In this document: in pieces, positions 12,001-36,650 of the stretch
How the letters are laid out: each line of letters starts with the position of its first letter
How positions within the stretch are numbered: the stretch's first letter is position 1
Assembly: GCF_032062105.1 (NCBI RefSeq)
Contig: NW_026932975.1
Coordinates: 434,001-498,000, forward strand
Source of the DNA: Saccostrea cucullata
Lineage: Eukaryota
Length of the DNA: 64,000 nucleotides
Direction: 5' to 3'
Program-made: the position numbers and the translations under genes
The notes under the pieces: model-generated
What the model saw: the letters and a program-made list of their open reading frames with translations, nothing else
Database searches by the model: none
Told to the model about the DNA's origin: nothing

Positions 12001-15000
12001 TTACTTCCTTCCAATAACTGCTGAAAAAGAGGAAAAAATATTTTTAAATTTAACAAAAAATAAATAAGTACAATTTGTGTGAAGTTAGCATATTAACTAA
12101 TTTAGCTTCAGAATACCAATTCTACTTACTTAGTTCAGTACCGCTACAGTCTTCGTCTATCCTTCCGTCTCCATCGTTATCTGTAAATCCAAAAATCAGA
12201 AATAAATACTAACTGTTCACATGAAGACCTCTCTAGACTGAATGCAGCAAACACAGAAAAGTCTAGAATCGTTATGACGTCATTAGCACATCACCACAAA
12301 TAACATTAAAGATCCATATGTATATTGCGATAAAAAAACGTGTAAATCCCGCAAAACTAGTAGATCTTTAGAACGAACGAATGAACATAATAGTAACGAT
12401 GATTAGAAATTTCGAGAGAAAGGGAAATCAAAATGAACATTCTAAAAAAATTTTTTATAACAACTCTCATATGTAAAGAAATTCAAGCTACTATGAACCA
12501 CAGATATGAGTAAAAGGTAGAATAACTAAATGCTTTGGTTGATTATTGTATACAGAGGGGGTCTTTAAAACTTCGTATTGGCTTTGAAGACCAGTCTTTC
12601 GGATGGGACCGTAAAACCAAGGCCCTGCATGTGTTGTAGTATGGCACAAAAAATATTCTTCTCTACCGATCAATAGTCCTTAATATCGAGTACAAGTCTT
12701 AAATTACCATCTCTCCACCAGCGAATTATTGAATAGTGGCGCCTTTGTATGAGTGAAATATTCTCGAAGAAACGTTAAACAAACAAACGGAAAATCAACT
12801 CATTATGCAAAACATTTAAACAAACTGACGCCAGTCGTTACCTTGTCCGTCGCAATCCTCTTCGTCCAATCTCCCGTCGCAATCGTTGTCTATTTCATCG
12901 CCTTTCTTCATCGGTGGTGCGTCACATACTGGGGCTTCACTTGTGGTCGGAGCAGACGGTGAGCTCGTGACTTGAGGATGCTGAGAAATTAAACAAAATA
13001 AAATTACACAAATCATAACATAAATTGGAAATTTCAAATATTACAACAGTTTACAACTATGCAAAAATATCTATCTTTTAATAAAGTACAATTCTCAGTC
13101 ATCTTAGGTTTTCAGTAAGGCGTTGGATTCTCGACATCAAATAGCTTCTGGAATTTACACAGCCTTTCTTTCATTCACTGTTGAAATATACATGGAAAGG
13201 AAATTCGAGCGAATGTCATCGAGTGTAGCAGTGATCCAATGACAGCGTTTCGTGCGGCAAAGAGGTGGGGCTTAAGTTATCTCATGATTGTCAACAAGAG
13301 TCTAAAGTTCCTGTCAGATGTTATTGATTTTTTTAACCAATGATAATCTATGTCGCCATTTGAAAAACGCTAATTACGTAGCCGAAAATACCACGCCTAC
13401 TGAAAGTCCAAGGATGACTGAATATTGTACTACTTTCCATAACAGAGAATCTTTGCATTAAATTTAAGAGAATTTTTGTGATTTGTTGTATAATGGCACA
13501 GTGATTTTGATCTTCTCAAATACTTAAATGTCGGTCAAGTTCTAAAACAATCTTTGAACAAGCACAACTATATTACAATCTTGCAGTCAACGATAAAATC
13601 AACTTTTGAAACAGGCTTGAAATAAGGTAATCAAAGTATAAATGGATAAAAAAGATATATTTAAAGGTGACTGATTCAACAACGCTTGAATTTACAGTGC
13701 AGGACGCCTTCTGTTTAGAGCAAATTGATCAGAAACAACTCACATGAACAGGATTGATGGGATTGACTAGGAATCCTATTGGAAATCCGTACGATTCCAC
13801 ATGAGCTCTGCCAAATAGGATTCCTCCTATTGTGACGTTGGGGCTTGTGTGTGTGACGGTGTGGGTTCCTACCGTTATATTAACGTACCCTCCTACAAGG
13901 TGCGCGCCGGGTATATGCACGTACTTCTGATGGTTTGGCAGTGGTTTTCCATCTAGAAGAAGGCCACCCTTTTGATGACTGTCGATTATAAACATAAACT
14001 GATTTAGGTATTGGCCTTTTGAATACTCCGGAGTTGTAAATGTATAATCTGTGCCGTACTGCTCAATGGGAGGCACCGTGATCATTGAGGGGTCGATATC
14101 TTCATGATGGTAGGCCTGGGTTCTGGAAAACTGAAATAAGGCGATTGGTTCACTGGCCACTACATGGGAGTACAGGAAGGAACTATAGACTTTTTGCACA
14201 AAGTCTCCGGCATGAGGAATGGTAAAGTTGTCAGTGAAGAGTGTTCCGTTAATTTTACCTTTCACCGATACTTTTGTGTTGTCTTTGCTTGCCACAAATC
14301 GAAACTCATCACCAACCGATCTCGCTGGGATGGGTACCGTTGCAAAATTTTTGCCCCATGACTGTACTGGCATCAACATTTCTGTTAGATGATCACGTGA
14401 CCCACCCGTGTTACCAACTATGGTTTTCTTGTTACCACTGATGACTCCGACAGGAAGACTTGAAATCACGTGACTTCCTGTTAGATCACCAACGGAGCTT
14501 ACTTGAAAGGTTTGGTATTTGTTCATAGTAACGTTTATCCAATCATTTTTGTGATACACGTGATTGTTGTACGTCACTTGAACTCCGTCTCGGTTCGGAA
14601 GCTGTATGGACACGTGTGTGTTGTCATTTCCAGAGATAACTGCAAACACGCAATAGTAGTAGGCCGGTGCGTATGAGATGGTGTAATACTCTGTACCTAA
14701 TACGTCTGTTGGTAAGGCTAGGTAGGCGTCATCTGATGCCGTCTCTCTGTTGACGCCGTAGACAACTATCTCATCATCAGTTGTTATTTTGATGGCTTTG
14801 TTGACCAGTTCGGTATGGTTCAAACGAAAATGAGGATCGACTTCCACCTTGTGGACAACACCGCGGGTCACAACAAAGGACATGTGGATTCTAGGATTTG
14901 TGGAGCCTGGGGAATTGACGTGAACATGGACTGGGTGATTACTGGCGGTAGTAATAAATAGTTCTGGACTGATGTCAAGTTTTGGATTGTGAAAGTTGTC

Positions 15001-15174
15001 CAAAAACGCAACAATGAATTTTGTTCCCGTTATCCAATGCAGCTTAAAGATAAAAAAATTTATTGAAGACAGGACAGGATTTGTTGGTGTACATTGTAAA
15101 AAATAAGAATCTGTACATAACTCACAGTACACCAAAGGAAGGAAAAATAGTCCAATACACAAAATGGACTTCAT
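12001..15174 (-). CDS. Secreted IgGFc-binding-domain protein, paralog 1 (apparent 2-nt frameshift at start of exon 2; possible pseudogene allele or assembly error)
   Basis: Exons 15174-15126 (MKSILCIGLFFLPLVY), 15042-13744 (IgGFc_binding domain), 12980-12842 (S/T/P linker plus CDAPPMKKGDEIDNDCDGRLDEEDCDGQ), 12180-12130 (DNDGDGRIDEDCSGTEL), 12020-12001 (TVIGRK*). Spliced length is 1558 nt, not a multiple of 3. Confidence 0.85.
12590..12790 (+). mobile_element. Diverged SINE 3' part
   Basis: TCTTTCGGATGGGACCGTAAAACC...ATGAGTGAAATATTCTCG...ACGTTAAACAAACAAAC resembles the reverse complement of the 11064 SINE. Confidence 0.6.
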
Positions 15175-15195
15175 TTTGTATACAACTGGAGATAA

Positions 15196-15232
15196 GACTG
15201 ACAAGTTTCGAGACGGATTACCTAATTATATA
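15196..15232 (-). promoter_or_regulatory. Putative TATA plus Inr core promoter of IgGFc-binding paralog 1
   Basis: Minus-strand TATATAA (15232-15226) lies about 30 nt upstream of a TCAGTC initiator-like motif (15201-15196), which is about 25 nt before the ATG. Confidence 0.45.
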
Positions 15233-16010: not shown

Positions 16011-17557
16011 ATGGCGGTTGACGGTTCTCAGAGAAACGAAGACTGGCAATCCTTCCGATCTGTTACCGACTGCAATAAGTACATGCTGACCAATGAAATT
16101 AATTGTGACATCACTTTCTTGATCGGAAGAGAGCGACAGCGCATGTCCGCCCATAAATATGTTCTTGCGAGTCGAAGCTCTGTCTTTTTTGCCATGTTTT
16201 ACGGTCCTGTGGCTGAAACAAATACTGAAATTGCGATTCCTGATTTGAAACCAAACATTTTTGCCTCTCTCCTGCGGTAGGCTAGTATACACAACCTAAA
16301 GTAATATGATAAAATAAAAATTAATATTCTGAGCACTAAATACGAGTAGTATGGAAAAGAAAATTTTTGAGTTCTTGAAATTTAGTTACCACAAATCCTG
16401 TATTTATCATTTAATTTTTTTCACATTCCTCGTTCTCTTTCAGTTTTCTGTATTATGAAGATTTGACTGTTCAAACGAATAATGCTCCAGATTTGCTTTA
16501 CGCAGCAAACAAATATGGTCTGATGAAAATTGTGAAAAAATGCAAAAAGATTCTGGAAGAGACAATGTCGGTCTCCAATGTCTGCAGTATCATGGAAAGT
16601 GCTCACACTTTTAACGACGCAGAACTACTCCGGAAGTGTCGAGAATTTTTCTATAAAGAGTCCGTGAAATGTATCCAATCAGAATCCTTTTTAGATCTCT
16701 GTGCAGAATGTATAGATAACATCATTTCCTCTGACGAACTTACCGTAGAGGAGTACTTGATTTTAGAGAGGGTTCTTGAGTGGGCAGATGCTGAGTGTGT
16801 TCGGAAAGACAAAGATTTAAATGATGCCAACAGACGACAGGCCCTCGGTAAAATCTTGAATCACATCAGGTTCCCTATCATGGATTCAAAATATTTTGCC
16901 GAAAATGTAGCTTGTCGTGAAATACTGTCAAAATCGGAAAGGCTTGCTATTTTCACTTTTATATGCAGCGGTCATAAATCTCAGACTGATTGTAATTTTA
17001 AGACATCCAAACGGAGAGGAAGATATGCGAGATCTAGTTCTTCGAGGCAAAATGCCCACATGTCACAAAGTAACAGACAAAGAGTGGCGATGCGATTTGC
17101 GCGCGAAGGACACGTTTCACTTAGGAACGAAAATCTTTGGTATGTGGGACAGAAATCCGATAAAATTGACTTTACGTCTTCCAAGACAATATATATTCAT
17201 GGAATCGTGATGTACGGCTGTGGAATTGAGGGGACAGAGTACAGCGTGAATGCCTCCATCCTTAGAACTGGTTTACCATTTCTTTCCAATGAACTTTCCC
17301 ACGTGAGCACAACGGTTCCTGTGAGAGTACCATATAAAACCTTCAACGTATTCTTTCCGGAACCTGTGCACATTTCACCGAATATAAAGTACACGATATC
17401 TGTGACCATGCAGGGTCCACGAAGCTACTGGGGAGAAGGAGGTGAGGAATCCGTAACTAGTGACGGTGTTCAGTTCGACTTTCACAAATCGTCAGGGGAG
17501 GCAAATGGAACAGATGTGGATCACGGTCAAATTCCTGGACTTATATTCATTAAATAG
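16011..17557 (+). CDS. BTB/POZ-BACK-PHR domain protein (BTBD1/2/3/6-like Cullin-3 adaptor), about 459 aa
   Basis: Exons 16011-16276 (CDITFLIG...SAHKYVLASRSSVFFAMFYG, BTB) and 16444-17557, joined in phase 2 (CG|gtaggc...cag|T). BACK region (LEWADAEC...IRFPIM) and PHR C-terminus (NGTDVDHGQIPGLIF). Confidence 0.9.
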
Positions 17558-18106: not shown

Positions 18107-21100
18107 TACAATAACAAATGAAATTATGACCTGTCAAATTTTTTCTTTCTGAATTTATACTCGTTTAGTTCTAGCCTTGTTTCAGTTATGGAAACAATTA
18201 CTATATATTGAGATGTTTACCATTCTTACTCTGAATTTTTTTTATAAATATGGACATTTAAGTATAACTTGGATTTATAGTATTCGTTTGAACGGCGGGT
18301 TGTGTACAGCTTTTGGCGGGAGTGTGAAATGGAGTATTTGCTGTTCCGATTTTATTTCAGGTTGTGGATCGAATGGCGATCAGAAATGATTTTGTCTATA
18401 GTTTAGAATGTCAAGTTATTTACAGAGTGTATCATTCATTATATAACAAAGTTTTGTTCATCATCAAAACATATTGATTGCAGTGATACATATCCGAGTA
18501 TGACATTGCTATTAAACATTAAAAAAAAACATCACCAATGTTTTTGTTGTTTATCAAGACATTTTATATATAGAAGCGCAAGCAAACAATTTTAACTCCA
18601 TATCTATTAATTATTCATTGTGATTTTTTAAAGTTTAGCGATCTATTCTTGAAATTTGATCGAACGTTATTGGACTAAACATTTAAAACAGGCAATAAGA
18701 AGAGATAATTGCTAGATAAGTCTTGATTTTTTTGTTTGTTACGGACACCTCGGAAGAGTAATTTTCAAAACAATGATTACTCTGGGTGCATTGTAGTAAT
18801 TCAAGGTAAAAAAAAAAGCTTTCTAACTTTGACTTTTCAATAGAACGCGTTGCACGGAATGCTCTTATTTAATTGTTTGCATTTCTTTTATTTTAACTGT
18901 TTTGTTTAAAGCAATGAGGCTTTTCGTCTCTGAAACTTCTTCAGCCACGTGAAATTGTGGAATATTAATCAGAATGGACATCCTGATAAAAGCAACAGGT
19001 AAGGCATACAAAAAATATCTTATGTGCTTCATTGCATTTATTTATTGATGGAAAAATTTATTTCATGTAGAGGGTTTAAAAATGTTCACGTCGTACTCTT
19101 GGAGTTGTTCTCCCTGCTTTTCTGATTTTTTTTTTCGTAAGAACAACGTGTAATCTGTCCAAAGACGGGAAAATCTCACATTCTGATGGAATAACACGAA
19201 CATTTAAAGCTAAATGCCGGATTATTGATATTCAATAAATCAGAAATCCATATTCGGATTTAAGCGTTATTCAATTCAATCATTATCGACCACTTTTACT
19301 TCTCCTTCAACAAATATTAAAAGAATCTTTAAAAATACGCTGCATTTCTAACTATGGTTTTCACATTTTTTTTAAATTAAAATAGAAAAAGTTTTGTAAC
19401 GTTTTTCTAAAAAATTCATAACACCAACTTTTTTTTATTTTTTAGTAAAAAAATCTGTGCATGGGAAAACACTTCATTTACACCCATATAAAATTTCCAT
19501 TATGAAATAAAATTAATGAACAAGATTTTTTCAAACAAAAAATTGTGAAAAAATACTAGAGTAGTTTTGTGTATAACCTAATTTAAGAAAAAAACAGCGA
19601 TGATGTTAATTAATAAGACAGCATTTAGGTAGCACAAAAATTAAAAGAAATGATTTTTCTAGCTGCAGGCCATCCAATACATTATTTTTCCAGAGAGCTA
19701 CAGTGTTGCAACTATGCTTTTCCATGAGGCCTTATGGCTCAACTTTTTCTTTTTCGTATTTCTCGAACAACCGAGTACCTTTTTTCATGTTAATTTTTTT
19801 TATTTTATAAAAAGTGATACGCTATTAAGTTATTGAATATAATTTTTTTTCCATCAGACATGTCTTTTCATGACGGAATCATATTATACGTGCACATGCG
19901 TAAATTCACATAACTCGATATGCTTTTAAGAGATGTTTTAGTTCAGTGGAAACTCAATCGATGATTCCATTGAATATTGATATGCACATTGTTTGCAGAG
20001 CTTGGTTGTACAACTTGGTATTTGTCTAACATTTAAGTTCTTTCATTTGAGATAGAGTTGCATTCATCATATCCTTGAAATCTTTTTCCGATAGATTTAT
20101 GGTCCATATTTTCTAAGCCGGGATTAGGATGAGGTATAAGTATTTGCTCTAGACCAGGGGGTACAGTATGAGATGTTTACGAGTGATTTTCTCACATTCT
20201 ACGCATACACTGTCCTTCACCCGATGCCATTTTAAACTGTATTGATGACTGAGATATGATATTTAATTGCATTTGTAAGAATTCATTGGTAAAATGATAT
20301 AAAGTTTGTATGAAACAAGGGCACCGCAAAGCGGAGCATCCCTTCTCACAGAGCATATCAGCATTGATTCTACATCGATCTTGAAAATATGTTTTGAAAA
20401 TCTTCAGATTTGTGCTTATCTTAGGTTTTTTTTATCTTGTTATCAAACAATTTCTGGCTTAACTTTAGATTTAGCTTACCTGAGCCAAAGTGAATCAAAT
20501 CAGTTGATTTGTTGGTCTGTTTTGTCACTGTAATTTTTATAAAATTCTCCATAACCAGTGAGCCAATTTAAACCAAACTTTACACATCTTAACTTATGAG
20601 TGCAAATATGAGGGTAAAAATGTTATAAAATGGCATACATGCATTATCATACAATTAAAATCAAATCTAAGTTCTGAGAATTATCTAATATATTAGAAGA
20701 TGACAATCTAATTTAAATAAGGTAAAGTTGAAATTGCTTAGAATACCACGGTATTTTCACTGGTGGTCGTTTTACAAAGTAATGGAGAAATAAATCAGCA
20801 ATGAAAAGCTTATATATACCTCTTTGTACTACTTATCTTATAAATCTACAGCTAGTTTTTGGTGTGTCATCTTCTTCACTGCATTTCAATATCCAAATGT
20901 ATTTTTAAAATAAAAAGTAAGATGTTATCGAAAGGTGGAGTAAATTCAAGATAATCAAACGGCATTTGTTGCTTTCTAAAAATATCGCGTACCTTGTAAC
21001 GAATGTCTTCATTATTTTACGACTAGAAATTAAATCTAAAACACCCTTTTAAGATTTGAACTGCAAGGTTGGCTGTAAAGCAAATACAGATTTAGTACAG

Positions 21101-21186: not shown

Positions 21187-21254
21187 ATGACAGCTCTTTT
21201 CAAGGCCAGCCCTTTACACACATGGAAGTTCATTAACGGTATATTATCTCTAAG
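21187..21254 (+). CDS. Candidate alternative first exon V1 (MTALFKASPLHTWKFINGILSL-R)
   Basis: ATG, open to AG|gtaatt, phase 2. Confidence 0.35.
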
Positions 21255-21966
21255 GTAATTGCATGGATTTCTTAAGGAAACGCACTCGAAGACACCTCTT
21301 TGCATTATAACAAATTATATACGAAACTTTTTAATTTATTTTTTTGTGGCCCATACTGACGATAAGTTGTTAATTACGAAACTGGCAAGGGGGTGGAATG
21401 ACTCTCCAGCGAGCAATGACGGAACTCTTTAATCTTGATAGTGCTTCTATACTAACTGGCAACACAATCGTAACTGCGCACCCTACCCTGTACTCGATGT
21501 GGTAGCGATAGTGCAAAGTGAGAATACGCATGATAATTTATATTGCACCATTTCAAACTGCTGTAAAAGCAACCCTTCGATTGTACCGTCTCATTTAGGG
21601 ATTGTCAAAAACATTGAAATTTATTTCCAGAGAATCGACACTATAGGGAGACTTATCAAACAGTGGAGAAAAAGGGTTTTAAAATCTGTCTGTGTCAATT
21701 CAAGTCTGCTTTTTAACTAGGATTACTCAATTGCACGAGAGAGGATTCAGTTTTTAATATGTAGGCTTAAAACGAAGTCTAAACGGATTTTTTCTGATCA
21801 TTTATGAAAAGATAAGACAATCAATGGCAGATTCTCCGCTCGCTGATTTGCGGCACGACCTGGTCAATGCCACGAACGTTAGTCAGTCGTCTGCGTTGAG
21901 CGCATCACACGGATCAAATAAGCTGTATCCGGAATAATGATTTGGTAATTAGCAAAGTATACAAGC

Positions 21967-22049
21967 ATGAAGGAACGGAACTTGTTTATGTGCTCCTTTC
22001 AAGAATTGTCACTTCCGGATATCACTCCAACAAGAGGACCGGAAGCGAG
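21967..22049 (+). CDS. Candidate alternative first exon V2 (MKERNLFMCSFQELSLPDITPTRGPEA-R)
   Basis: agcATG, open to AG|gtaatg, phase 2, in a locally GC-richer island. Confidence 0.45.
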
Positions 22050-23634
22050 GTAATGTTACTATCAATCGCCTTGTTCGTATTTAGGCTGTCATTAATTTTG
22101 CAAAATTCCTAAATTTTAAATTTATGTGGATTTTTTGAAAGATTGGTACTCTGTAAAATCACACCTGTGAAACTGCCTTGTTCATATTATACATGTACCA
22201 ACATTTAATTGTCAAGACAATAATATTTCTTTTTTTTTCTGAAATAGTTCCATTAATTTAAATATATTTAATATCTATATTTTTCAACTATTTTTCAATT
22301 AGGATTAAAAATAGCTTTAATGTTCCTCTGCGCTTCATAAGACAAAGAGATTGTGTATAGAATTGTTAATCAAAACATAACAACTTTAGAAAGAAAACTT
22401 TGAACGCGATGATATGCAAAATTCTATTTTAACGACAATAACCTCATTTTGAATGTGATAACTACTTTGAAATTACTCCATTTTTTGAAGCAATTTTATT
22501 CATTAGCAAAATCGATGAATTGATTTTGATTTTGAAATTCTCATTATAAGTGCAATGTTACTTTATACCCTGAAAATATCGCCAATATAATTGTGATTTT
22601 TACGTGATACTTCGTTCTATTGTAATTGTTAAATGCAGCTTGCATTCTGCATTTAAATACATGTATAATGGATTAATGGTTTAACTACGTGTTTTTTCTC
22701 AAAATATGACATTATAATGGATTTAAGATTTAAAATTATTGAACAAAAAAGAATTGAAGGTTGATATAAATTGTATTCGTTATGAATTCATATCCAAACT
22801 TTAACATTCCCGTATTTATTGACTTATTTCTTCAATCTCAGCACAACCTATAATTATTTTGATATTGCCGCGATTGAAAAGGGGCCATTTACTTGAATGC
22901 TAATATGTATATAATTTTACAGCTGTTTTAAAACACAAAAAAAGGTTTTTACCCGGACATTTATCATTTAAAGTGGTGAATGTGACTCAATCATCCGATT
23001 AAATTGACACGATTTACATTTCTTTTCCTCAATGTAAATATGAAAAACATGATTCAGATATGTAGAATATGATTTATCATTTTCTTTATCATAAAGGTGA
23101 AAACCTTTTCACATAACGTTCGCATTTTTCTTTGACATGCTAGTTTTTATCGGAATTTTGCACTTTTAATTCTCTACTTTATTGGACCAACACCAGAATT
23201 CTTTAGACTCGTCCTTTACCATTCATTTATTTGACATTTTTGTTCCTATTGCCTAAAGAAATTCAAACAAGAAAACGCCTTTTTACCAAACTATTTCTTT
23301 ACTATTCCTAGTTTTGTGATATCGATGCACTGTACACAGGTTATTCTGATTCCGCGTTATGCAACTCTTAATTGCATGATGAATGCTTAGGTTTGTTCAC
23401 TAACGATTTTTCAGAAATCGGTAAACATTTTTTTCGATGTTATCTCTGGAATCATTTGAATTGAGGTTTATAGACAGTAGATGTAGAGTACTTTACGAGC
23501 TGGGCTTCATGAATCCTGAGATTTCTAATATATTTTTTTAAAGGATCAAATCTTGGTTCTTATGGCTTTGAGTAATTAATCTAAACAGCACATACTTCTT
23601 TGGTTTTATTGAAAATGCCGTGATTATAATCATT

Positions 23635-23705
23635 CATCTTCGCAAGCCAAGGGTTTTCGGTCCGTAACACTCCCACGGACCGAAAACCTTTGGCTTGCGA
23701 AGATG
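23635..23705. mobile_element. 71-bp hairpin mini-element with 9-bp TSD
   Basis: 31-bp arms with 1 mismatch and a 9-nt loop, flanked by ATAATCATT direct repeats. Confidence 0.8.
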
Positions 23706-23800
23706 ATAATCATTGAATTTCTGAACTTTCTTTGCTGTCTTTGATTTATAATCTTTTTTGCAACCTTTATGTAGTAGAAAATGTATACGTCACAGTTGGA

Positions 23801-23850
23801 ATGACGTCATTTCTTCCATTAGTGCATCTTTTTGTCAAGAGGAAATGTAT
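23801..23850 (+). CDS. Candidate alternative first exon V3 (MTSFLPLVHLFVKRKC-I)
   Basis: ATG, open to AT|gtaagt, phase 2. Confidence 0.35.
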
Positions 23851-26037
23851 GTAAGTTTCTTTAAAACTAAAAATCATTTGCCATTTTTTAAGTTCTATAG
23901 TGTTGACTTGTAGAAAACCTCCCTCCGCGACCCCACACGGCGGACAACTGTCTGGAAGTTGTCGGTAAAAGGTAACATAGCTATGGTGAAGGTTTCTAAG
24001 AAGTACCTGAAATAGGTCATGTCGTAGAAATTTTGACCCAGCACTGTTTATATAGCTTCATCTGTCCACATCATCAGTTGGATTGATTTTTTTAATGAAG
24101 GAGGTAAAGCTTTTTCATTTGGTTGTTTAATTTTTCGACTTCAGCGTTTGGGTATCAGGTTTAGAACTAAGGTTGAGTTTTTTATTTTATTTTTCGGATC
24201 ACGAGTGTTGTATTTTCTTCTAGATATTGGAATGCATTGATATTTTACAGTAAAATGCAATTTGATTCCAGTTTCTTGATATCTAAAACTTCAATTTTCT
24301 TATACGTTTGGGAAATAATAAATGGATCTAGAAATCGGAAATTAATCATATGGAAAGTTCTACGACAGGGGCTATATATTTTATGCAGCAATATTTTTAA
24401 TATTTGTAGATCTGGACTAGAAAAATCCTTATACATTATCAAAACGTTTTATAAAACTGTTTGAAACAAAAAGGTATGTGGAAACCTTTCGACAACCTGT
24501 GTCCATAACGAGCTATATTGTATAAGGTCATACGTGTTAGTGAACACTTCTGGAATTGTTTTTTGCGAATATTGCAGTTAGTTTACTTCAATAGGATAAA
24601 GACACAAACAAATGCAAATCATGTTGCAGATAATGAAGAGAGGAAGTGCCAGTTCGTGAGGCAGATTATCTGATTTCATTTGTCTTTAATGGTGTTTTGT
24701 GCATCAATCCACTGTATTTACGTTGCTTTTGATATTTTTGTTTCTTGTTTTCTTCGGTGTTTTCAATGAAAGACCCCCGCATTTGAAATAATACCACAAT
24801 TTTTAAGTTGTAAATCAGTTTTCAATACAAAACGCCATTCATATTTTTGACAACAAGCAGACTTGTAATTTCTTTTATGTTCATTTTGACATTGTATTGA
24901 TCATAACTCTTAAAGGATTTAAAGTTATGCACGCAGAGAAGTTGTTTAGACCCACATTATGATTAAAATCCGAAGCCATGTTCCCGATGCTGGTCATTTG
25001 TCTCTGCTTTTGGCATTTTAATAAAGTTCAGTCTCAAGTTTTTAATGAACATATATCTCTTTAGACCTTTCATCAATTCCAATATTTGCTTTTTAAATAC
25101 CCATTTCACAAAGATTTTATAGGAAACGAGGAAGATGTGTTTAGAAACCATGTAATATTAGAACCAGGAGAGAACATATTTTACTTTCGTAAAAATCATC
25201 AGAATAAAAAATGAGTATTTTGATAAGCCTATTCAAAATTTATTTGATATCAATTGAACCGGAGAGGAATTCTTTAGTAATTAGACAGAGGAAGGGTAAT
25301 AAATGCCGATATCCTTTAATACGCTGACGATGGGGAGGTGATATAGAATGTCGGGTCTGGAGGTCTGGTATTGTCAGGAGTCAGAGCCAGTCAAAAGACG
25401 AACTCAGGCAGGGAGTTTCTGATTACCAGCGCTGTGTACCGGATGTAAGTTTACTGAAAAAGCCGTAATCCAACGCGCCCTGGATCACTTCATCGAACCA
25501 TTGGACCCTATACCTACAAAGAATCACCATTACTGCATGTGTGTGTAAAGAAGCCGTAATTACCTCGTTTGGACCAACTTTCTACATTTTCATTGTGCTT
25601 TTATATCCTCGACTTTCATACTAATCCATAGTTATATTTACAGACATTTTAGCTGTTTGACTAAACATTTTGAGACTTTGACACTTTACTATTGGAATTT
25701 GTTCCTTGTTTGGCAATGCTGTGTGAAGACATGATAAAAAGAAAAGAAAACAATTCCGGAGTGGGGATTGTGGACAATAAGCGACGAACGGGAATTACGT
25801 ATAACAATAGAAATAACCTGCCATATGTGTGTTTATATTTACCCAAAAGTTTAAATACAGCAGCAGTATTACTGAAGTTTATTGACAATTCTATCAATGT
25901 TTGACGACCTATTGTTCTTTAGATTGGGTCATTGTGATATTTTCAAAATTGTTCTTCATACTTGTTTTGCATCCTTTTCCTGTGCTTAAAGTGAAGATGC
26001 CGTTGGCATTTGCAGCTAAATTTGTTTAAACGTTCCT

Positions 26038-26267
26038 ATGATTAAGATGTATCTGGCAAGTTGCGGTCAACAAATTCGCCAGGTGGACGTTAACGATAAT
26101 AGGAACCTGAAGATGGTCAGTGGCTATGACCTTCTGGACAAACTCTCCCGCCGAAGGATGTATGCCCGCTCCAATGTCCGCGAGAAGTCCTCCCTGTCAG
26201 ACCACTATGACCAGCAGAATTTCGTCATCAGCCTTGATGACGTAGGAATTGAAGTTGAGGGTCTTGG
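26038..26267 (+). CDS. Candidate first coding exon V4 of the 33014-34334 gene
   Basis: 76-codon GC-rich ORF ending GG|gtaggt. Phase 2 matches the 33014 acceptor (GG+A = Gly, then LMER...). Confidence 0.65.
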
Positions 26268-26305
26268 GTAGGTGTTGCATCAGTGTCTTCTACTTTCAAA
26301 AGTGT

Positions 26306-26308
<3 letters not shown>

Positions 26309-26340
<32 letters not shown>
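26309..26340 (+). repeat. (TC)n microsatellite
   Basis: Uninterrupted TC dinucleotide run. Confidence 0.95.
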
Positions 26341-26343
<3 letters not shown>

Positions 26344-27729
26344 GCACCCAACTGACAATATCGGATCCCATTTCAATAAGATAGAGAAAGCATTTCGTAA
26401 ATTACATTACCTGCAATGAAAATCATTAAGTTTTGCAATATCAAAATCTGAAGAAAAAAAATGATTTGAAAAATAATTTGATTGAAAAGGATGATAATAG
26501 ATAATACTACTCAGTACTTTAAAGATTCAACAGGCATGCATAACTTCTGGTTAAAGATGTCCAGATGCATAAAAACTCGAATAGATTTCTAATTTTGACC
26601 TCATACGGTTTCTGTGCGTGGATTAAACAAATTACTTGTGGACATGTTACACAATGTACATGTACGTAAGATTGACATTTGGATAAGGTGGATATTATCC
26701 GTAATGGTAATGAAACATTAATATTACATCAAGACAACGAACATTTATAATAATCAAGCATGCATTCCCTGTTGACCGGGTTACATCCGGCTTTTGCTTC
26801 TTATAATGATCGGGTAAGCGCAAAGATCCAAAGACAATTCAGTGTGAAATACTAGTTTATTACCAAACATTCTGATAAAAGTGAGTATGCATTTGACTTA
26901 AAGATATATTCTTTATTTTTAAAAACGCATGAATTAATCGGACCCTTTAGAAGATATTAATAAATGAGAAATTATTTGACTGTTTGTACATAATCTCAGA
27001 AGTTTCAGAAAAATATTTATAGTGGTCTTTTTCAACAGAAACATCAACTCTGAAGAATTTTTCCGATAAAGTCGTCGAATATTTTTCCATCCAAGAAAGG
27101 AACATCTGTTGGTTCAAGGCGTATTGAAAATTTATCAATTTGAATAATTTATAATCATGTTAAATGCATTTGTTTTCTCACTGAATAACAAATTCTTTGA
27201 GAGACAGCAGGTTGCCAGTAATTATATGTTTGATATACAAGGTCACGGAACTTCTTTATTCTCCTGCCTAATTCTTATCGACTCGATCATTCCGGGTCAT
27301 TGCTAGACATCTGTCTTACCCGCCCGGAATTACCATTCTGCTAGTCTTAACATTGTTCACGGGGGTTTTTAATTTCGAATCAGTTTTCTCAAATTTGGCA
27401 GAGATAAGGCTTGTAGAGGATTAAGGTAGTAATGGTAGGTTAGACATTCCTTGATACTTCAAATGTTAAATAAAAATTAATGTCAAAATAATCATTTAAG
27501 TGAAGAGATAAATTAAGATGATAATAGTTTTTTGCCGATTAACCGATATTCTGTTGGCGTTTATTAAAAAAAAGGATATGAAGTGTTTGCATTTGATGAC
27601 CATTGCATGAAAATGCTTATGTCATTCAGAATCATAAGTGTTGGCAAACTATGGTCAACATTGCTTCTTTACTGTCAATTCAGAACTGCTTAGATAGAAA
27701 GACAAGAAATGAAGGCTATTACATTTTTG

Positions 27730-27800
27730 GTCTCTCTTTAGGAATTATACAAAGCTGAAAGCTCTGAGCTTTCAGCTTTGTATAATTCCTCAAGAGAGAC
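27730..27800. repeat. Near-perfect palindrome
   Basis: 35-bp arms with 1 mismatch around a 1-nt centre (27765). Confidence 0.85.
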
Positions 27801-29680
27801 TATATAATGTAATCAGCGCATTCGCTTCTCACATCATCATGAGTTTTAAACTGTAAGATTGACATCTCAAAGAAATCAAATTCTTTTGCAACTTTTGAAA
27901 AATGATCTGGTCTACTCATCATTAAGAAGGTATTTCACAACATTGTTGAAGTATATAGACCGTTAGACAAATTCTCGCCGCATTCATTTGAATTTCAACA
28001 TGAGATGAACATTTTAGGTCATTTTTTTTTAACCAAAAGATGTGAATCGTGGTTATGTTCATTTCATGTATGGCACTTTTTCTCTCCAGAAACAAGTTTA
28101 TCAGACATTCTGGAAACGTTTTGTTCCTGTATAAAAGACATTAACTGCTCCTTCTAGCATTTATTTTTTATAACTATGCATCTTGTGAAGAAATTATTCT
28201 GCATGCCCTTTAGCAACGTGTAGGAACATATAGAACATATAGGAAAGAATATCCATTTAATGGCACATTGTTGAGAATAAATGCCGTATTTTCAATTGCT
28301 GTACATTAACTATATTGAATGCAGTTCCGTAAAAAGTTTAAATTGATGTAAATTGAAATGCATGAAGAGATTTATTTCGTCTTTGTCGGGAAGATAAGTG
28401 AAAATTATGACACCACTTGAGATCTAGGTAAATACAAGAAGTTAATTTGTGTAACATTATAGAATTCGTCCACTAGGGCGGTTATCTCAGATCGATAAGT
28501 CGTGTTTGAACTTCAATTTGAATGTTTGTGGCTGAGATGCTATCATTTAGAATTTGAAGAGGTTCGTAATCTTCGTTATATTATTTGCTTTTCACAGATC
28601 GATATTAGGGGATGAATCTGGACAGGTGTGGGATAAGTTCCCCTGCTGTTCTTTGTATAAGTGGTCTATTGCTAGAACATCTTTGAGGTAGATATCAGAA
28701 AGTTTTCACGGTGGGGCACCACGGAGTCAAGGGTTGTTTTTTGTGGAAATATTTTGGTAGTGTTGTTTTCAGCTGGAAATATCTATCAGGTAAGAATAAG
28801 GTAACTGAATAAAAAAATCTAATTGCAAGGTGTTCGATGTATGTATATTTTAATTTAAAGATTTGACGATAAGTAATTTATAATTTGATAAATAATTATA
28901 CATAATTTTTAAAGAGAATATATATGCTGGTAAATAAATATCTACCGGTATATCAAGCGACAAACTTAAATGACGAAAAAGAGTAAGCTAAACTTTTTTT
29001 CTCTAAGTCCTGAGATTAAAGAGACATTTGAAGAAGGTGTTTATGCATACTTTTGCATCTACACAGGTACAAATTTTTTGAGGCTAAATTGTGTTTTTCA
29101 TTTTAAGGTGAATATGGTTGTAAGTTTTTGAATACTCAGCAGCAGATGTATTTCTAATTTTCTATAGTTGTAGGTTTTTTTGAATGGTTTTGTAATGCTC
29201 TTTATCCATTCATAAGTAAATTAGAAAATTTTGTAAATTAAATGTCAGAAGAGTAATTGTGATCCATTTTTAACTCTTTTACATTTTAACTGTTAAAGAT
29301 TTTAATTCAATCAACTTACTGAATCGAGGAAAAAAATGCTCCTGGTGCATACTTTCAATGTATCCCATTCAGTGATTTATTCTGTCATTTACTCCTCAGT
29401 TTATTAAAAGCCCGCTTAATTTACATTTTTCACATATTGATAGATTCTTTGATCGTCAAATACAGAAAATGATTTCATTTAAGATTGATATCTTTATTGA
29501 CCCATTGCATAATATTTGGCATCAAATTACATTTTTATTAAAGATAGCATTGAATTTGTCTTAATCTTTTTTAAAACACTAGACACTTCAAGTTAAACCA
29601 GTGGGACTAAATTGTCGTGTATGAATTACAACATAAGGATTACCAGATACGCCTTTTATATCTCTGTCTCTCTCTATTTG

Positions 29681-29730
29681 ATGTTTCTTGGATTCCAGTT
29701 AAGAGAAACAGTCAGCCCAGCCTTCTCTAG
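29681..29730 (+). CDS. Candidate alternative first exon V5 (MFLGFQLRETVSPAFS-R)
   Basis: ATG, open to AG|gtgagg, phase 2. Confidence 0.4.
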
Positions 29731-30363
29731 GTGAGGTCCCGTATCGTTAGGTCTAAGGACTGAATTTCTGAAGACGTACCAGTATCCATGTTGTGAGTTC
29801 TATAACACTATAGAACAAGGTCTGACCCGCGCTTGTCATCTCGTCTGTGGGGATTACAACCAAATGAAAATCTTTCTCGGCAATTTCTTGTAATTTCGCG
29901 GAATGATATTTAATTTATGATATATTAATGGTTTGTAATTGTGGGATAATATCGCTTTTATGGATTCCAGCAGATCCTCTGTTTACTGTGAGGACAGTGA
30001 CAAGGCTTAGGGTCCATTGAAGCTGTCTTATCCCACCGATGATTCCTTTTCCTCTGACACTCAGATCTAATCACGATATCAGTAGTTTAAATAACAGCAA
30101 AAATATTTATCAAATACACAAAGTCCTTTAAATTTTTCTTCTTCGCACTTCAGAGTTGTTTTGACATATGATTTAATACCTTTGTGAATGTTGTCCCCTC
30201 CAGAACGGAGCACGCGATAATCATAGCTGGTTTTTGTTAGGCCTTCTGTATCTCTATTTAGTCTATTTAACCCGGTCTCTCTCTAAATAAGTGGGGACTT
30301 TTGATTTTATTTGTTATGAGTCTCTCTCTGTCGTGTGGAGGGTCTTTATAAGGAAAAACCAAC

Positions 30364-30437
30364 ATGTCAGAGGAACGCAAGCTGTTGAATTTGTTCCCTG
30401 TATCTTTGTCTTTGGAAGATAAACAGTTACTTGTGCG
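30364..30437 (+). CDS. Candidate alternative first exon V6 (MSEERKLLNLFPVSLSLEDKQLLV-R)
   Basis: aacATG, open to CG|gtaggt, phase 2. Confidence 0.5.
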
Positions 30438-32403
30438 GTAGGTATTGATGCTTATAATTAAAAAAGTTTAAAGTGGCTCAATATTCTTAAAATGATGCTC
30501 ATTTAAAGTCTAAGTCGAGGGAATTGAGGTACCAAGCTTTGAAAGTGCGTGCATTAAAATGTTTGTCTAAAATTAGAAGATTTTGCCTTGAATATACAAT
30601 GGTAATTATGATGAAAATGAATATTAGTATCCGTAAATCTAATCATTTTTTTTACTAACTTGCATGAAAACGTTCTTCAAACGTTTAATAAACAATCAGA
30701 GTAACAACGTGTATCGTAACTTTAAAAGGATACGTGGACAATATATGGTTTCTTTTTCATCTATATTTTGGATCCCACCTTACATTTGCATGACATTTCT
30801 TAAATGCCAAATCTAACGTGATAATTTCTTCTATAGTCTTTCTTAGTCTCTTTGTAGAAAGAAGACTTAAATTGCAGTTGGCGTCAACCTAGAATTTTTA
30901 GTTCTACCTCTAATTTGTACATGAAAAACTTGGTCACAAGAAGAACGGTAATCAAAGAGACCCTATTATGGATTCCAAGAAATGTCAAGATAAACTTCAC
31001 CTACTTCCGGAATGTCGCGCGCATTTTGCTTAAATCGTGAGCAAGTTTATTATACATGCAAGGTTCTGTTTCAGATAAGGGGTTGAACTTCCTGCAAAGT
31101 TGTCGATTTGTCTGCAGGGGATAGGTGGTCGAGTTTCCTAATTGAAATCTTGCTCGAATAACAAAATTTCTATGTGGTGACATTCGATTGTGTTTTGATG
31201 CAGTTTTGTTGATATTTGTATCGTTAGTTCTCTTTGTGAGCAAACTTCCGGTGCAGAATTATTAGATTCCATTTTTCAAGACAAAAGGACAAGTAACAAT
31301 CAACAAAAATGGTTTCATTTTCGATCAATAGAGCATAAAAGTGACTGATTGAAAATACAACATTGTGAAGAAATTTCATAACAGTCAGTAGCGATAAAAA
31401 TCTGTGTGTGCTTAGAGCATCGATTTTCCTTTATTACATTTATTACCTTCATAGGATTGAATTGCTATTTTGTAGGCACTAATGGAGCAAATATAATCAA
31501 AGTTTACTTGTAAATCACCACTGAAGACTTGTCACTAAATAAAACAGATGTATAGAACGAAATGAGAAATTTTGCAGATTAGAAAACTTAAATTAACTTC
31601 TCATAAACACATTATTGCTACTTCTTTAGAAATCTTGGTTAGCAAATGGTGGGATCAACCAATGTGCCGTAAACGCTTCAAGAACATTAATACCCCATGA
31701 CTGTTCGGGTTGAAGAAACCAGGCGAATCTTTTCTTCCTTTCTTCTTCGCATTCTTTATGTATTTCAGTGAAATCAGTTTTATTAAGAAGTCGTGCATTT
31801 GTCTCTTAGGAACCGTGAAGACTTGGGGTATTTTGTTCGCCTTGTGACAAAAATCGTATTAGAACAGCTCAAAGAATCTGAAAACACGACGCAACGAAAG
31901 GGAGACTTCGTATTTGCCTCTGTATTTTCTTTTTCAAAGAAGGATGGTTTTGAAAAGATGCCCAGTGTCGCAGTGCGCACCTGCCACGGATTCTTTTATG
32001 TGGGTATTAGCTCCCCTTGATGGCCGTCCATTTCCTGTCTAGGAAACCCCTGCCGAGCATGTGTAATTAAGTGGCAATTAAAAAGAAAAGATTGGAGTGT
32101 ACCGAGAGAAAAACCTTTTAACCTTTCTTACAAGACAAACATTAAACACTTCATTTCAAATATCTGTTATTGATCTATTCGTATATGAATATTCTTGCAT
32201 TTTCTTTTGGTTGTTGTCTGAATATTTAAACACAAGTGTTGTCGGAGAAAACTCCTTTTAGATTTATGTGACGTCTCCGCGAGCTCTCGGGATTAACAGT
32301 TCCTTCGTCGTCAGTGATTTTTTGAAGTTTATTTCCATTTGGCTCTACATTTTGATGAAAAAGTTTGGAGAAATATAACGTATTTGACAATTGTTCTGTA
32401 AAA

Positions 32404-32459
32404 ATGAGACAAAAAGGGTGTTTTCGATATTCCTCGGAATCGGATTTTCATTTACCTAG
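32404..32459 (+). CDS. Candidate alternative first exon V7 (MRQKGCFRYSSESDFHLP-R)
   Basis: aaaATG, open to AG|gttggt, phase 2. Confidence 0.35.
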
Positions 32460-33013
32460 GTTGGTTTGTTCAGTAATATTTTTTTTCCTAGACAAACTTC
32501 AGTTCTAAGCTTTTATTCTGGACTTTATTATGCCAATTGCGTTAAGCAGATCGATTCTAGACTTTCATTTCTTTCCTTGTACACAATGTTTTTTTCTTTG
32601 TTTGTCAGATAAGAATTTCTGTAAGTGTGTTTGTAAGATAAAATTCGTCATAGAGCAACTATACATGTATATAGGTTTGTAGATTCATTTTTTAAAGCTT
32701 TTAAAGGTGGAATACGGAAAGAAAATAATTTTATTTCTTGTAAATGTTAAATTCTACGTCGTCTTGCGTGAAATCATCATGGTTGGAAAAATCCATTAAT
32801 AGCTCTGAAGTTAGTAACTTTTATTTTTTCTTTTAAATGGAACTCTCAAAGATTACTTTCTCATTTTTATTCATTTTATTTTTTTTAAAAAATTCAAAAC
32901 ACAAACATTTTAAAGAAACAAACAAAAGGTCTTTGACTCCAGCGAAGGTTCCTCCTTTTACGCCCTATATACTGTAAAATTATCTGTCATGGCAGGTTTT
33001 TTTGTCGTTGTAG

Positions 33014-34334
33014 ACTGATGGAGAGGACAAGCATAGACCACCGACGCTCTCGGACAGTGCCCTGGTTCGAGGACAATAGATCCTCCTATCAGCACCACGC
33101 CGAGTACCTTAAAAAGCTATCCACTCTGCGAGATGAACTTATTCTTCAGGAGCAGTCACACCTTGCCAATGCACTCGACAGATTACGCATGCGCCAATAC
33201 AGCAGAGATAACGCGCTTGCGCGGAATAGATCAAAGGATTTTCCTCCAGACTCAAGGCGATCTTTAGTGACTACCATCGAACAATTCCAGAAAATGAGAC
33301 CAAAGAGGTCTCCACCACATATATCCCCATTAGAGGGAAAACAGATTCTAGAACCACAGACTTATAAACCCTCCAAAAGTCCGCAGTTATCGGAGAAAGG
33401 TGCGTCTCAACGGTTAATGGACGACAGTGTTCGGGCAAACCTACAGAGGATACCACCAACAACCGTGCAACCGACATCTAGCATCCCGAATATAGGACGT
33501 AAATCCATCGCTAAAAGCAAGGAACTGGTATTAGATGGTTCTCCAATCCACAGGCGTGGTACGTTACCGTCGCGAGATGAGAGAGACCCATTGGAAATAA
33601 ACCCGTTCAAAGCTGTGTACAAGGGTAATAATGGAACGCGTTTAAAGCGTCTAGTGCGACCAGATTCCGACGAACTTGATTTGCGAGCTCAAGCTATAAG
33701 GTTTGAAGCATTAAGTGATAAAGATAGGATAAATATGGACAAACTGAGAGAATATTACTGCATTTACTATCTACCAACAAACACACCAACGAACGTGTCA
33801 GATGACGAAGATTCAATGGAAATACCGGAAGAAAGAGTTGTGCAGGAATCGGCGGGATTTCAGCATGATAAAAAGAAACGTTTGACTCTGCTAGAGGGTA
33901 GAGGAAAAGGTGTACATCCCGCTGATCGTGTTATTAATTCTCCAAGGAAATCTCGAGAGGAACAAAATAACAACGGAATCACAGACAGATTGTTTCTAAA
34001 TGGCCAGGGAATTCGAGACCAGGATGTGACAGTACCGGCGGAAAGTCAACCGCTGGAGGAAAGCCCGTCGTTCTCCATATACGGTGATCAAAATTGTGCA
34101 GTTCCTGCCCGGAAGCAAATCATTGTGGACATGCCTTCTATTGTATTCAATAACGCATCACCAGAAAATGAGAATTCTGACGTCTTGGAACGGAAGCGGC
34201 GTTCAGTGTTACAAAAGACGTTCAAGCAGAATGAGATCCGACAACGGGAACTACGTAATCTGTTCGATGACGTCAGAGAATTGAACAAACGTAGTGACGA
34301 ACTGACAGAGTCAATAAAGTCCTCTTCAGATTAA
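33014..34334 (+). CDS. Constant coding exon of an uncharacterised, largely disordered protein with predicted helical/coiled-coil ends (438 aa from ATG 33018)
   Basis: 1.3-kb stop-free, GC-enriched ORF. Acceptor ttgtag|A CTG ATG at 33013/33014; AATAAA near 34556. No domain recognised. Confidence 0.8.
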
Positions 34335-34580
34335 AATAGTGCTTTCGCAAAAGTAGTATTACCATTCTTTTCAGAGACATTTTTCGTAATTTATTACATG
34401 CAGTAGCTCATCGGTGCCATGTCACTAGTTGCCATGTCATTGCATGCCAATTGTTGTTCATCTAGTCATTCACAAGAATCTATTCTATACACTTTTGTTT
34501 ACATCAGTGCACATTGCTTAAAATTCTTTTGTTTAAAATATTTATGAAAGAAATGAATAAAATAAATTTCAAAGCTTTAA

Positions 34581-36650
34581 AAAGATGTGTTTTTGAAACA
34601 CTGATGCCTCCATTTAGCAGATTTGGTGAAAGTCAAAGTTGCCAAATGCAAGGTCAAGACATAAAACATGTTGTTACCTAAGGAAAGGACTTGTCTGAAT
34701 AATTATACCTGTAAAATATGAAAGCCTAAGCACCAATCAATAAAACAAAAATGACCAACATCAAACTTTTTTTAAAATTTGAGTCAAGGTCATGGTCAAA
34801 GTTACCAAAATAATGGTACCCAGAGGAAGGTCTTCTCGTTAGAGACGTATGTGTGAAACATTAAAGTCCAAACACCCACTGTTTAAAAGTTATGGCCAAG
34901 GTTAAGTTTTTCAAAAATAGGTCAAACTACAATGTCAAGGTCAAACATTATTGTTATCCAAACGAATGTCTTGTACTAACTGTTCAAAAGTTGTGGCCAA
35001 GGTTAAAGTTTTATTTTAAAGTTGGTCAAACTAATAAATTGTAAAAAATACTAGTACTAGTATATATAAATTCTTAGAAAAGTCTTCTCATATACAGTTT
35101 AAATACTAGTCCATAGATGAAGTACGAAAGCCATTTCCCAACTGTTCGTAGGTTATGACCAAGGATAAAGTTTGAAATTTTTTTGGCAAAAGTGGGTGAA
35201 ACTCCAAGATCAAGGTCAAAAAACAAATACATGTATGTTAGAACCCAAAGGAAGGCCTTGTCACAAGGAATTATGAAAGTCTTAGCTCCAACCAATCAAA
35301 AGTTGTGAGTAAGGTTTAAAGTCTTTTGTGGACAAACAGACAGCTAGACAAACGGACGGACAGGGCAAAACTATAAACGAGTACTCCCGATTCTTCGATT
35401 TTCAGCATAACAAGATGTGTTTGTGAAACACTGATGCCCCGGTATGGTAACATAGCGAAGATTAAACTTTTCTGATATGCAAATTTAATATATTGTTTTT
35501 CAAAGTAGAGTATTCTCAATGGAAATACAATTGGGAAATATGAAAGTAGGCCAAGGTTAAAGTTTTTCATAAATACGAAAATCTCCAAGGTCAAAGCAAT
35601 TTGTATCCAATGACAGGTCTTGCCACAAAGAATACATACTAGTATGTGAAGTATGGAAGCCCCAGTCCTAACCCTTCAAACGTTATGGCCAAGGTTACCG
35701 ATTTTAAAAAGTAGGTCTAACTCCAAGGTTAAGGGATCATAATTCTTGATATCAAATGAAATGTCTTGTCACAAGGATTACATATGTGAAGTATGATATC
35801 ACTAGCCCTTGGAGTTCAAAAGTTATGGCCAAGGTTAAATTTTTTTCATAAGTCGGAAATCTCCAAGGTCGAAGTCAAAAGGTCAAGGTAATTGGTATCT
35901 AATGAAAGGTCTTGCCACAAAAAAATACATCTGTGAAGTATGGAAGCCCTAGCCCTAACCCTTCAAAAGTTATGGTCAAGGTTACCGATTTTGAAAAGTA
36001 CTTCAAACTTTAAGGTCAAGGTCAAAGGGTCAAATTTGGTGGTACCCAAAGAAAGGTCTTGTCTCAAGGATGAAATATGGAAAGAATCAAAGCACTAGCC
36101 ATAACCCTTTTAAAGTTATAGTCAAGGTTTGCTTTTTAAAAGTACGTCAAACTCCAAGGTCAAGGTCAAAGGGTAAAAGTTCTTGGTATCCAATGAAGGG
36201 TCTTCTCACAAGGATTACATATGAAAGTCGTATCCCTTATCGTTCAAAAGTTAAGGCCAAGGTTAAAGTTTTTTCACAAGGACGGAAATCTCCAAGGTCA
36301 AGGTCAAAAGTTCATGATTGTTGGTATGTAATAAAAGTTCTTGCCACAAAAAATAAATATTTGAAGTATAAATGTCCTGGTATCTACTGTTCAAAAGATA
36401 TGGCCAAAGTAAAAGTTTGGAATTTTTGTGTAAAAGTGGGTCAAACTCCAAGGTCAAGGTCAAATTTGGTGGTACCCAAAGAAAGGTCTTATCACAAGGA
36501 ATACACATGTGAAATATGAAAGTCATAGCTCCACTAAATTAAAAGTTATGAGCAAGGTTGAAGTTTTTGCGGACAAACAGAGGGACAGACATACAGACAG
36601 AGAGACAGCTAGACAGACGGACGGACACGACAAAAACTATATGCATACAA
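34581..36650 (+). repeat. Two adjacent Helentron-like non-autonomous elements with internal tandem arrays (about 130-140 bp units)
   Basis: Both start with AAGATGTGTTT.TGAAACACTGATGCC (about 34582 and 35412). Internal CAAGGTCAAGGTCA...GAAAGGTCTTG...AAAGTTATGGCCAAGGTT units, ending in GACA/GACG microsatellite blocks. Confidence 0.8.

Follow-up and report, generated by a model that had tools for sequence, protein, structure and literature searches.

A 64,000-nucleotide stretch of the genome of the oyster Saccostrea cucullata (contig NW_026932975.1, positions 434,001 to 498,000; hereafter the window, whose own numbering is used throughout) carries on its + strand a 438-amino-acid open reading frame (ORF) at 33018-34334 that is 100% identical to the RefSeq entry 'uncharacterized protein LOC134236713'. 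It is highly probable that the region from 18.9 to 34.6 kb on the + strand is one single-copy gene, LOC134236713, whose 5′ end is picked from at least five conserved alternative first exons. The locus is a real, conserved alternative-first-exon gene with four coding first exons and at least one non-coding first exon. The first exons lie along the window in the order E-A-B-C-D from 5′ to 3′, and the whole common coding body of the gene occupies one terminal exon (a slash marks a splice site here and below):

about 18951 to 18998, + strand: exon E, the most-upstream conserved 5′ exon; donor CAG/GTAAGG, with the first intron G at 18999
21967-22049, + strand: coding part of exon A; 27 codons plus 2 nucleotides (nt); exact N-terminus of isoform X2 (467 amino acids)
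26038-26267, + strand: coding part of exon B; 76 codons plus 2 nt; exact N-terminus of isoform X1 (516 amino acids)
30364-30437, + strand: coding part of exon C; 24 codons plus 2 nt; exact N-terminus of isoform X3 (464 amino acids); kept in four oysters
32404-32459, + strand: coding part of exon D; 18 codons plus 2 nt; exact N-terminus of isoform X4 (458 amino acids)
33014-34334, + strand: constant exon; 100% match to all isoforms; open reading frame with the stop codon at 34332-34334

A first-pass annotation of the same DNA, made by a model from the letters and their ORFs, had described an unannotated gene built on an orphan exon. The gene is in fact annotated: a cluster look-up returned isoforms X1-X4 of LOC134236713 together with the 438-amino-acid form, the ORF in the window is 100% identical to XP_062574883-87, and the gene is single-copy in the S. 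cucullata genome. The core of the first-pass proposal, that several ATG-bearing first exons of one phase are spliced to one constant exon to give isoforms differing at the N-terminus, is borne out by the annotated isoforms, four of which map exactly to four exons joining position 33014. Exons A-D each end after two codon bases, which permits in-frame joining to the single acceptor TTGTAG/ACTGATGGAG between 33013 and 33014. This acceptor is kept in four species and reads into LMERTSIDHRR. The codon completed at the junction encodes R for exons A, C, and D and G for exon B, and is followed by L-M-E-R. The constant exon also has its own ATG at 33018, one codon past the acceptor, which opens the 438-amino-acid ORF; both this internal ATG and exon E had been overlooked. 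At the other end, the 3′ untranslated region (UTR) probably extends to about 34580, because AATAAA is found at 34556 and the similarity to Saccostrea echinata stops at 34582.

We compared the locus with the orthologous loci of S. echinata (L001), Crassostrea virginica (L002), and Ostrea edulis (L003), where the corresponding models are LOC133197229, LOC111126378, and LOC130051891, respectively. The coding lengths of exons A-D (81, 219, 72, and 54 nt) and their order are the same in O. edulis and C. virginica, and those of exons A-C also in S. echinata. Exon A measures 81 nt in all four oysters with 88-99% nucleotide identity, and nearly all of its changes are synonymous. In exon B, the other oysters begin at the ATG equivalent to 26047, and 219 nt are kept without insertions or deletions, with the differences found mainly at codon position 3. 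The exon D peptide is kept in O. edulis and C. virginica; in S. echinata, this exon appears intact in a blastn alignment, the sole source for it there, and is absent from the RefSeq model. Substitutions at codon positions 1, 2, and 3 number 21, 13, and 57 against C. virginica (chi-square P = 1e-8) and 21, 5, and 55 against O. edulis (chi-square P = 3e-11). This concentration of changes at the third position indicates purifying selection on the A-D peptides and hence that the peptides are functional. Judged by their substitution pattern, exons A-D are under purifying selection and evolve as coding sequence.

Exon E behaves differently. It aligns to the coding exon that begins isoform X5 in both O. 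edulis and C. virginica, and its phase-2 frame contains no ATG in either Saccostrea species; the conserved ATG there, at 18974, falls in phase 1 and is out of frame. The coding capacity of exon E varies between oysters (no in-frame ATG in Saccostrea, 8-35 residues elsewhere), unlike that of exons A-D. Because an in-frame ATG is missing, translation of exon E transcripts is expected to start at the constant-exon ATG 33018, and these transcripts probably give rise to the 438-amino-acid core isoform. If the junction is as the exon ends predict, ATG 18974 would open a 9-codon upstream ORF ending in a TGA that shares bases with the main ATG at 33018 (TGATG); this overlap may be a feature of translational control.

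RNA-level evidence was obtained from Magallana gigas, a related oyster, whose Logan contigs lack the intron and therefore derive from spliced RNA. In contig L019, exon C is joined to the constant exon, with the contig mapping to window positions 30361-30437 and then 33013-34336. In L028 and L029, exon A is joined to the constant exon and ends at the exact equivalent of 22049; upstream of the exon A ATG, these two contigs are collinear with the window for 24 nt and with C. virginica for 76 nt. The orthologue of exon E is joined directly to the constant exon in L020, and a further 5′ exon is joined to the same constant-exon start in L030. The L030 exon has no detectable orthologue in the window, and no match was found when it was tested as an orthologue of a first-pass candidate at 23801 or of the exon that begins C. 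virginica X6. Contigs with four different 5′ exons (A, C, E, and that of L030) share an identical constant-exon start. The Logan contigs carrying ORFs of 436 amino acids in C. virginica and 431 amino acids in O. edulis are collinear with the genome and unspliced and provided no junction evidence.

Each of exons A-D is preceded by a block of sequence that blastn finds conserved, and a separate conserved element was detected as well:

21335-21966, + strand: block before exon A; 70-75% identity to C. virginica and O. edulis; presumably 5′UTR and promoter
24774-26037: block before exon B; shared with Crassostrea and Ostrea
29563-30363: block before exon C; shared with Crassostrea and Ostrea
30986-32403: block before exon D; conserved in O. 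edulis, with C. virginica matching only at 32041-32230
about 28390-28610, strand unassigned: conserved non-coding element; 82-84% identity to C. virginica and O. edulis

The element at 28390-28610 is better conserved than the coding constant exon. It belongs to no Rfam family, and a test with RNAalifold for a conserved RNA fold found no supporting covariation. Possible roles are those of an enhancer, a promoter, or a first exon without coding sequence.

These data bear on whether exons A-D are first exons at all, since they might instead be mutually exclusive internal exons used after a shared non-coding first exon such as exon E, which does lie upstream of all four. We consider this arrangement unlikely. 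In contigs L028 and L019, which carry exons A and C, the 5′ parts stay collinear with the genomic loci of the aligned oysters over 55-76 nt ahead of the ATG, and no upstream junction is seen; such collinearity fits first exons rather than internal exons. Furthermore, exon E is found joined straight to the constant exon, no polypyrimidine-AG acceptor is present just upstream of the ATGs of exons A-D, and conserved blocks of the kind listed above lie upstream of each exon.

According to the alignments and a structure prediction, the protein encoded by LOC134236713 belongs to a family of uncharacterised metazoan proteins and has two long helices, with a middle part that is mostly disordered. The AlphaFold2 model of the 438-amino-acid core shows the two helices at residues 20-69 and 388-437 with a predicted local distance difference test score (pLDDT) above 90, and everything outside them with low confidence; the pLDDT is below 50 for 263 of the 438 residues. 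The shared body is thus largely disordered, as the first-pass term 'disordered scaffold' had it, with two confident helices in addition. No Pfam domain and, by sequence profile, no PDB relative was found for the protein, and the neighbours returned by an ESM Atlas search were all unrelated and low in score (best 0.78). Homologues are spread over the bivalves and gastropods, nearly all of them with [RGK]-L-M-E-[RK] at the start of the constant part. A profile search yielded 105 relatives at E up to 0.001. The sampled ones include proteins of sea urchins, a sea cucumber, and the annelid Owenia, with a sea anemone as a weak match. Every one is uncharacterised, and none of the sampled relatives has a Pfam domain or a solved structure. 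The alignments display a motif in the N-terminal helix, W-[FY]-E-D ... YLxKLxxLR, and another in the C-terminal helix, P-x-I-x-F ... QNE[IL]RxxELxNLxEDV[KR]ELN. The gene and its three oyster orthologues are automatic models, all named 'uncharacterized protein', and no mention of their gene identifiers was found in the literature searched. The N-terminal modules can be followed some way outside the oysters. The exon B module (SGYDLLDKLSRRR...G/LMER) is also found in the scallop Argopecten, and a motif resembling exon A, [ST][FL]xE[LV]xLP[PD][IV], precedes RLMER in Haliotis, Mercenaria, and Mya; the latter match is suggestive only.

We propose that the 5′ end of LOC134236713 is chosen among the alternative first exons E-A-B-C-D, each joining the acceptor between 33013 and 33014. 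Exons A, B, C, and D each supply their own ATG and a distinct conserved peptide, of 27, 76, 24, and 18 residues, respectively, and each first exon would have its own promoter. The N-terminal peptides would serve, in a plectin-like manner, as exchangeable modules for addressing or partner binding, carried by a scaffold with two helices and a disordered middle. A wider form of this proposal is put forward tentatively, as a possibility that we rate somewhat below even. The four peptides may be an ancient set of interchangeable tags on a metazoan-wide coiled-coil and disordered scaffold, expressed from their own promoters and sending the scaffold to different compartments or cell types, the exon B tag being as old as the oyster-scallop ancestor or older, and the exon A tag possibly as old as the ancestor of bivalves and gastropods.

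Several points weigh against the alternative-first-exon reading or limit it. The donor of exon D, TAG/GTTGGT, is weak at 4.75 bits. The use of the A-D donors in S. cucullata itself is deduced from RefSeq models and conservation, and the RNA-level evidence comes from another oyster in the form of assemblies, in which 5′ truncation is possible. The separate promoters are something we infer indirectly, from the conserved upstream blocks and from 5′UTRs that are collinear with the oyster genomic loci, and the role of the peptides as address or partner-binding modules is suggested by analogy.

The peptides might also have no role. The alternative 5′ exons could be promoters and 5′UTRs only, with functionless N-terminal peptides and the 438-amino-acid core as the working protein. 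Nearly all molluscs compared retain ATG 33018 and the L-M-E-R start, and the coding capacity of exon E shifts freely between oysters, as such an account would have it. However, in exons A-D the ATG, the phase, and the precise length are all maintained across the oysters compared, and most changes are synonymous, which is unexpected for untranslated sequence; the exon B peptide is, moreover, recognisable in scallop. We therefore think it quite improbable that the peptides are mere passengers, and prefer the reading in which exons A-D contribute selected coding sequence.

The first-pass annotation had likened the locus to UGT1A, the clustered protocadherins, and plectin, and the comparison holds for the last of these only. 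As in plectin (PLEC), short first exons with no homology to one another, each with its own ATG, lie dispersed over many kb. All are in the same phase and join in frame to one common exon, so that the isoforms differ at the N-terminus only. On the other hand, LOC134236713 is unrelated to plakins in sequence and in domains (no Pfam match), and its common body is a single exon. Isoform-specific targeting has been shown for plectin, whereas for LOC134236713 the likeness is one of exon layout alone; it is a likeness of mechanism class, not of homology family. With the clustered protocadherins and UGT1A, the locus shares an ordered row of several first exons that use one constant-region acceptor. 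The variable exons of those systems, however, are paralogous to one another and arranged in tandem, with an entire domain encoded by each, whereas exons A-D encode 18-76 residues and have no significant mutual similarity: in pairwise local alignments they score no better than shuffled sequences (best P 0.07-0.10).

These results place the locus in the ordinary class of alternative-first-exon genes, a common design, and its isoforms are already in RefSeq. The remaining interest is modest and lies in a domain-less family (molluscs, an annelid, echinoderms, perhaps a sea anemone) with several independently conserved N-terminal modules, which makes LOC134236713 a tractable case for what short N-terminal tags do in a lophotrochozoan.

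The number of first exons had been put higher, at seven or more. The seven segments proposed do exist, each starting with ATG, remaining open, having a length of 3n+2, and being followed by GT. Four of the seven, those at 21967, 26038, 30364, and 32404, are exons A-D, and comparison between oysters, which had been offered as a check, shows them conserved as coding sequence. The other three, on the same strand, fail on conservation and are most likely chance ATG-GT segments. In the segment at 21187-21254, S. echinata has a 5-nt deletion that causes a frameshift and also lacks the donor GT, and no match was found in Ostrea or Crassostrea. In S. echinata, the segment at 23801-23850 is still open from its ATG to a retained donor and has the same phase; as a coding exon it was rejected on account of many peptide differences and a 3-nt indel in that species, and it is likewise unmatched in Ostrea and Crassostrea. 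A perfect palindrome resembling a cAMP response element, TGACGTCA, occupies 23802-23809, overlapping the ATG of this segment, and is kept in S. echinata. The donor of the segment at 29681-29730, GT at 29731, reads TG in S. echinata and O. edulis. This segment sits in the strongly conserved non-coding block upstream of exon C and is 93% identical to its counterpart in S. echinata and 77% identical to that in O. edulis.

The phase statistics agree with this reduced count. We scanned 17.6-33.0 kb for ATG-open segments of at least 48 nt ending at a donor, in phases 0, 1, and 2, and compared the counts with those in Markov shuffles. Phase 2 was not in excess when all donors, weak ones included, were counted: with donors of at least 3 bits, there were 13, 14, and 15 segments in phases 0, 1, and 2. 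The predicted enrichment of phase 2 appeared when the scan was restricted to donors of at least 7 bits, with counts of 2, 0, and 5 against about 1.2 per phase in the shuffles (P about 0.003); the minus strand gave 1, 2, and 2. The excess arises because three of the five segments are annotated exons, and the remaining two are at chance level. The accompanying statement that segments in phases 0 and 1 reach at most 18 codons was incorrect, as a 46-codon phase-0 segment ends at the donor at 29107 (8.2 bits) and a 32-codon phase-1 segment at the donor at 26661.

That all of the seven or more segments are genuine variable first exons, forming an array like those of the protocadherins or UGT1A, is thus very improbable: although every one of the seven has the right phase and a GT, the donors at 21254 (7.45 bits) and 29730 (10.2 bits) are strong, 23801 persists in form in S. 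echinata, and the lineage-specific 5′ exon of M. gigas L030 means that species-specific first exons exist, 21187 has a shifted frame and no donor in the sister species, 29681 lacks its donor in two relatives, 23801 has no coding-type conservation or match beyond the genus, about 1.2 strong phase-2 segments are expected in the span by chance, and the variable exons are not paralogues.

The gene lies in a neighbourhood whose order is common to the oyster loci: an IgGFc-binding gene (- strand), a BTB-BACK-PHR gene (+), the LOC134236713 orthologue, and a TGF-beta-receptor-type kinase gene (-), the last falling inside the compared range only in C. virginica and O. edulis. In the window, the upstream neighbour is represented by an ORF at 16463-17557 (+) with BACK and PHR domains; its orthologues additionally have a BTB domain, and the synteny is kept in the three other oysters. 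Three large ORFs on the - strand, at 724-2064, 7042-8415, and 13729-15204, each contain a full IgGFc_binding domain (Pfam E about 1e-58) and form a tandem set, made up either of paralogues or of exons belonging to one or several IgGFc-binding-like genes. The other oysters likewise have an IgGFc-binding gene on the upstream side of their BTB gene.

Just 3′ of LOC134236713, a tandem repeat with a unit of about 146 bp (5.4 copies, 68% matches) extends over 35587-36369. A 149-amino-acid ORF at 36070-36519 was considered as a gene and set aside as probably spurious, since it lies mostly within this repeat. Repetitive sequence is also found 3′ of the orthologue in C. virginica, where positions 28449-32888 of L002 show a long array of matches to Logan contig ends, spaced by about 50 bp, which points to a minisatellite.

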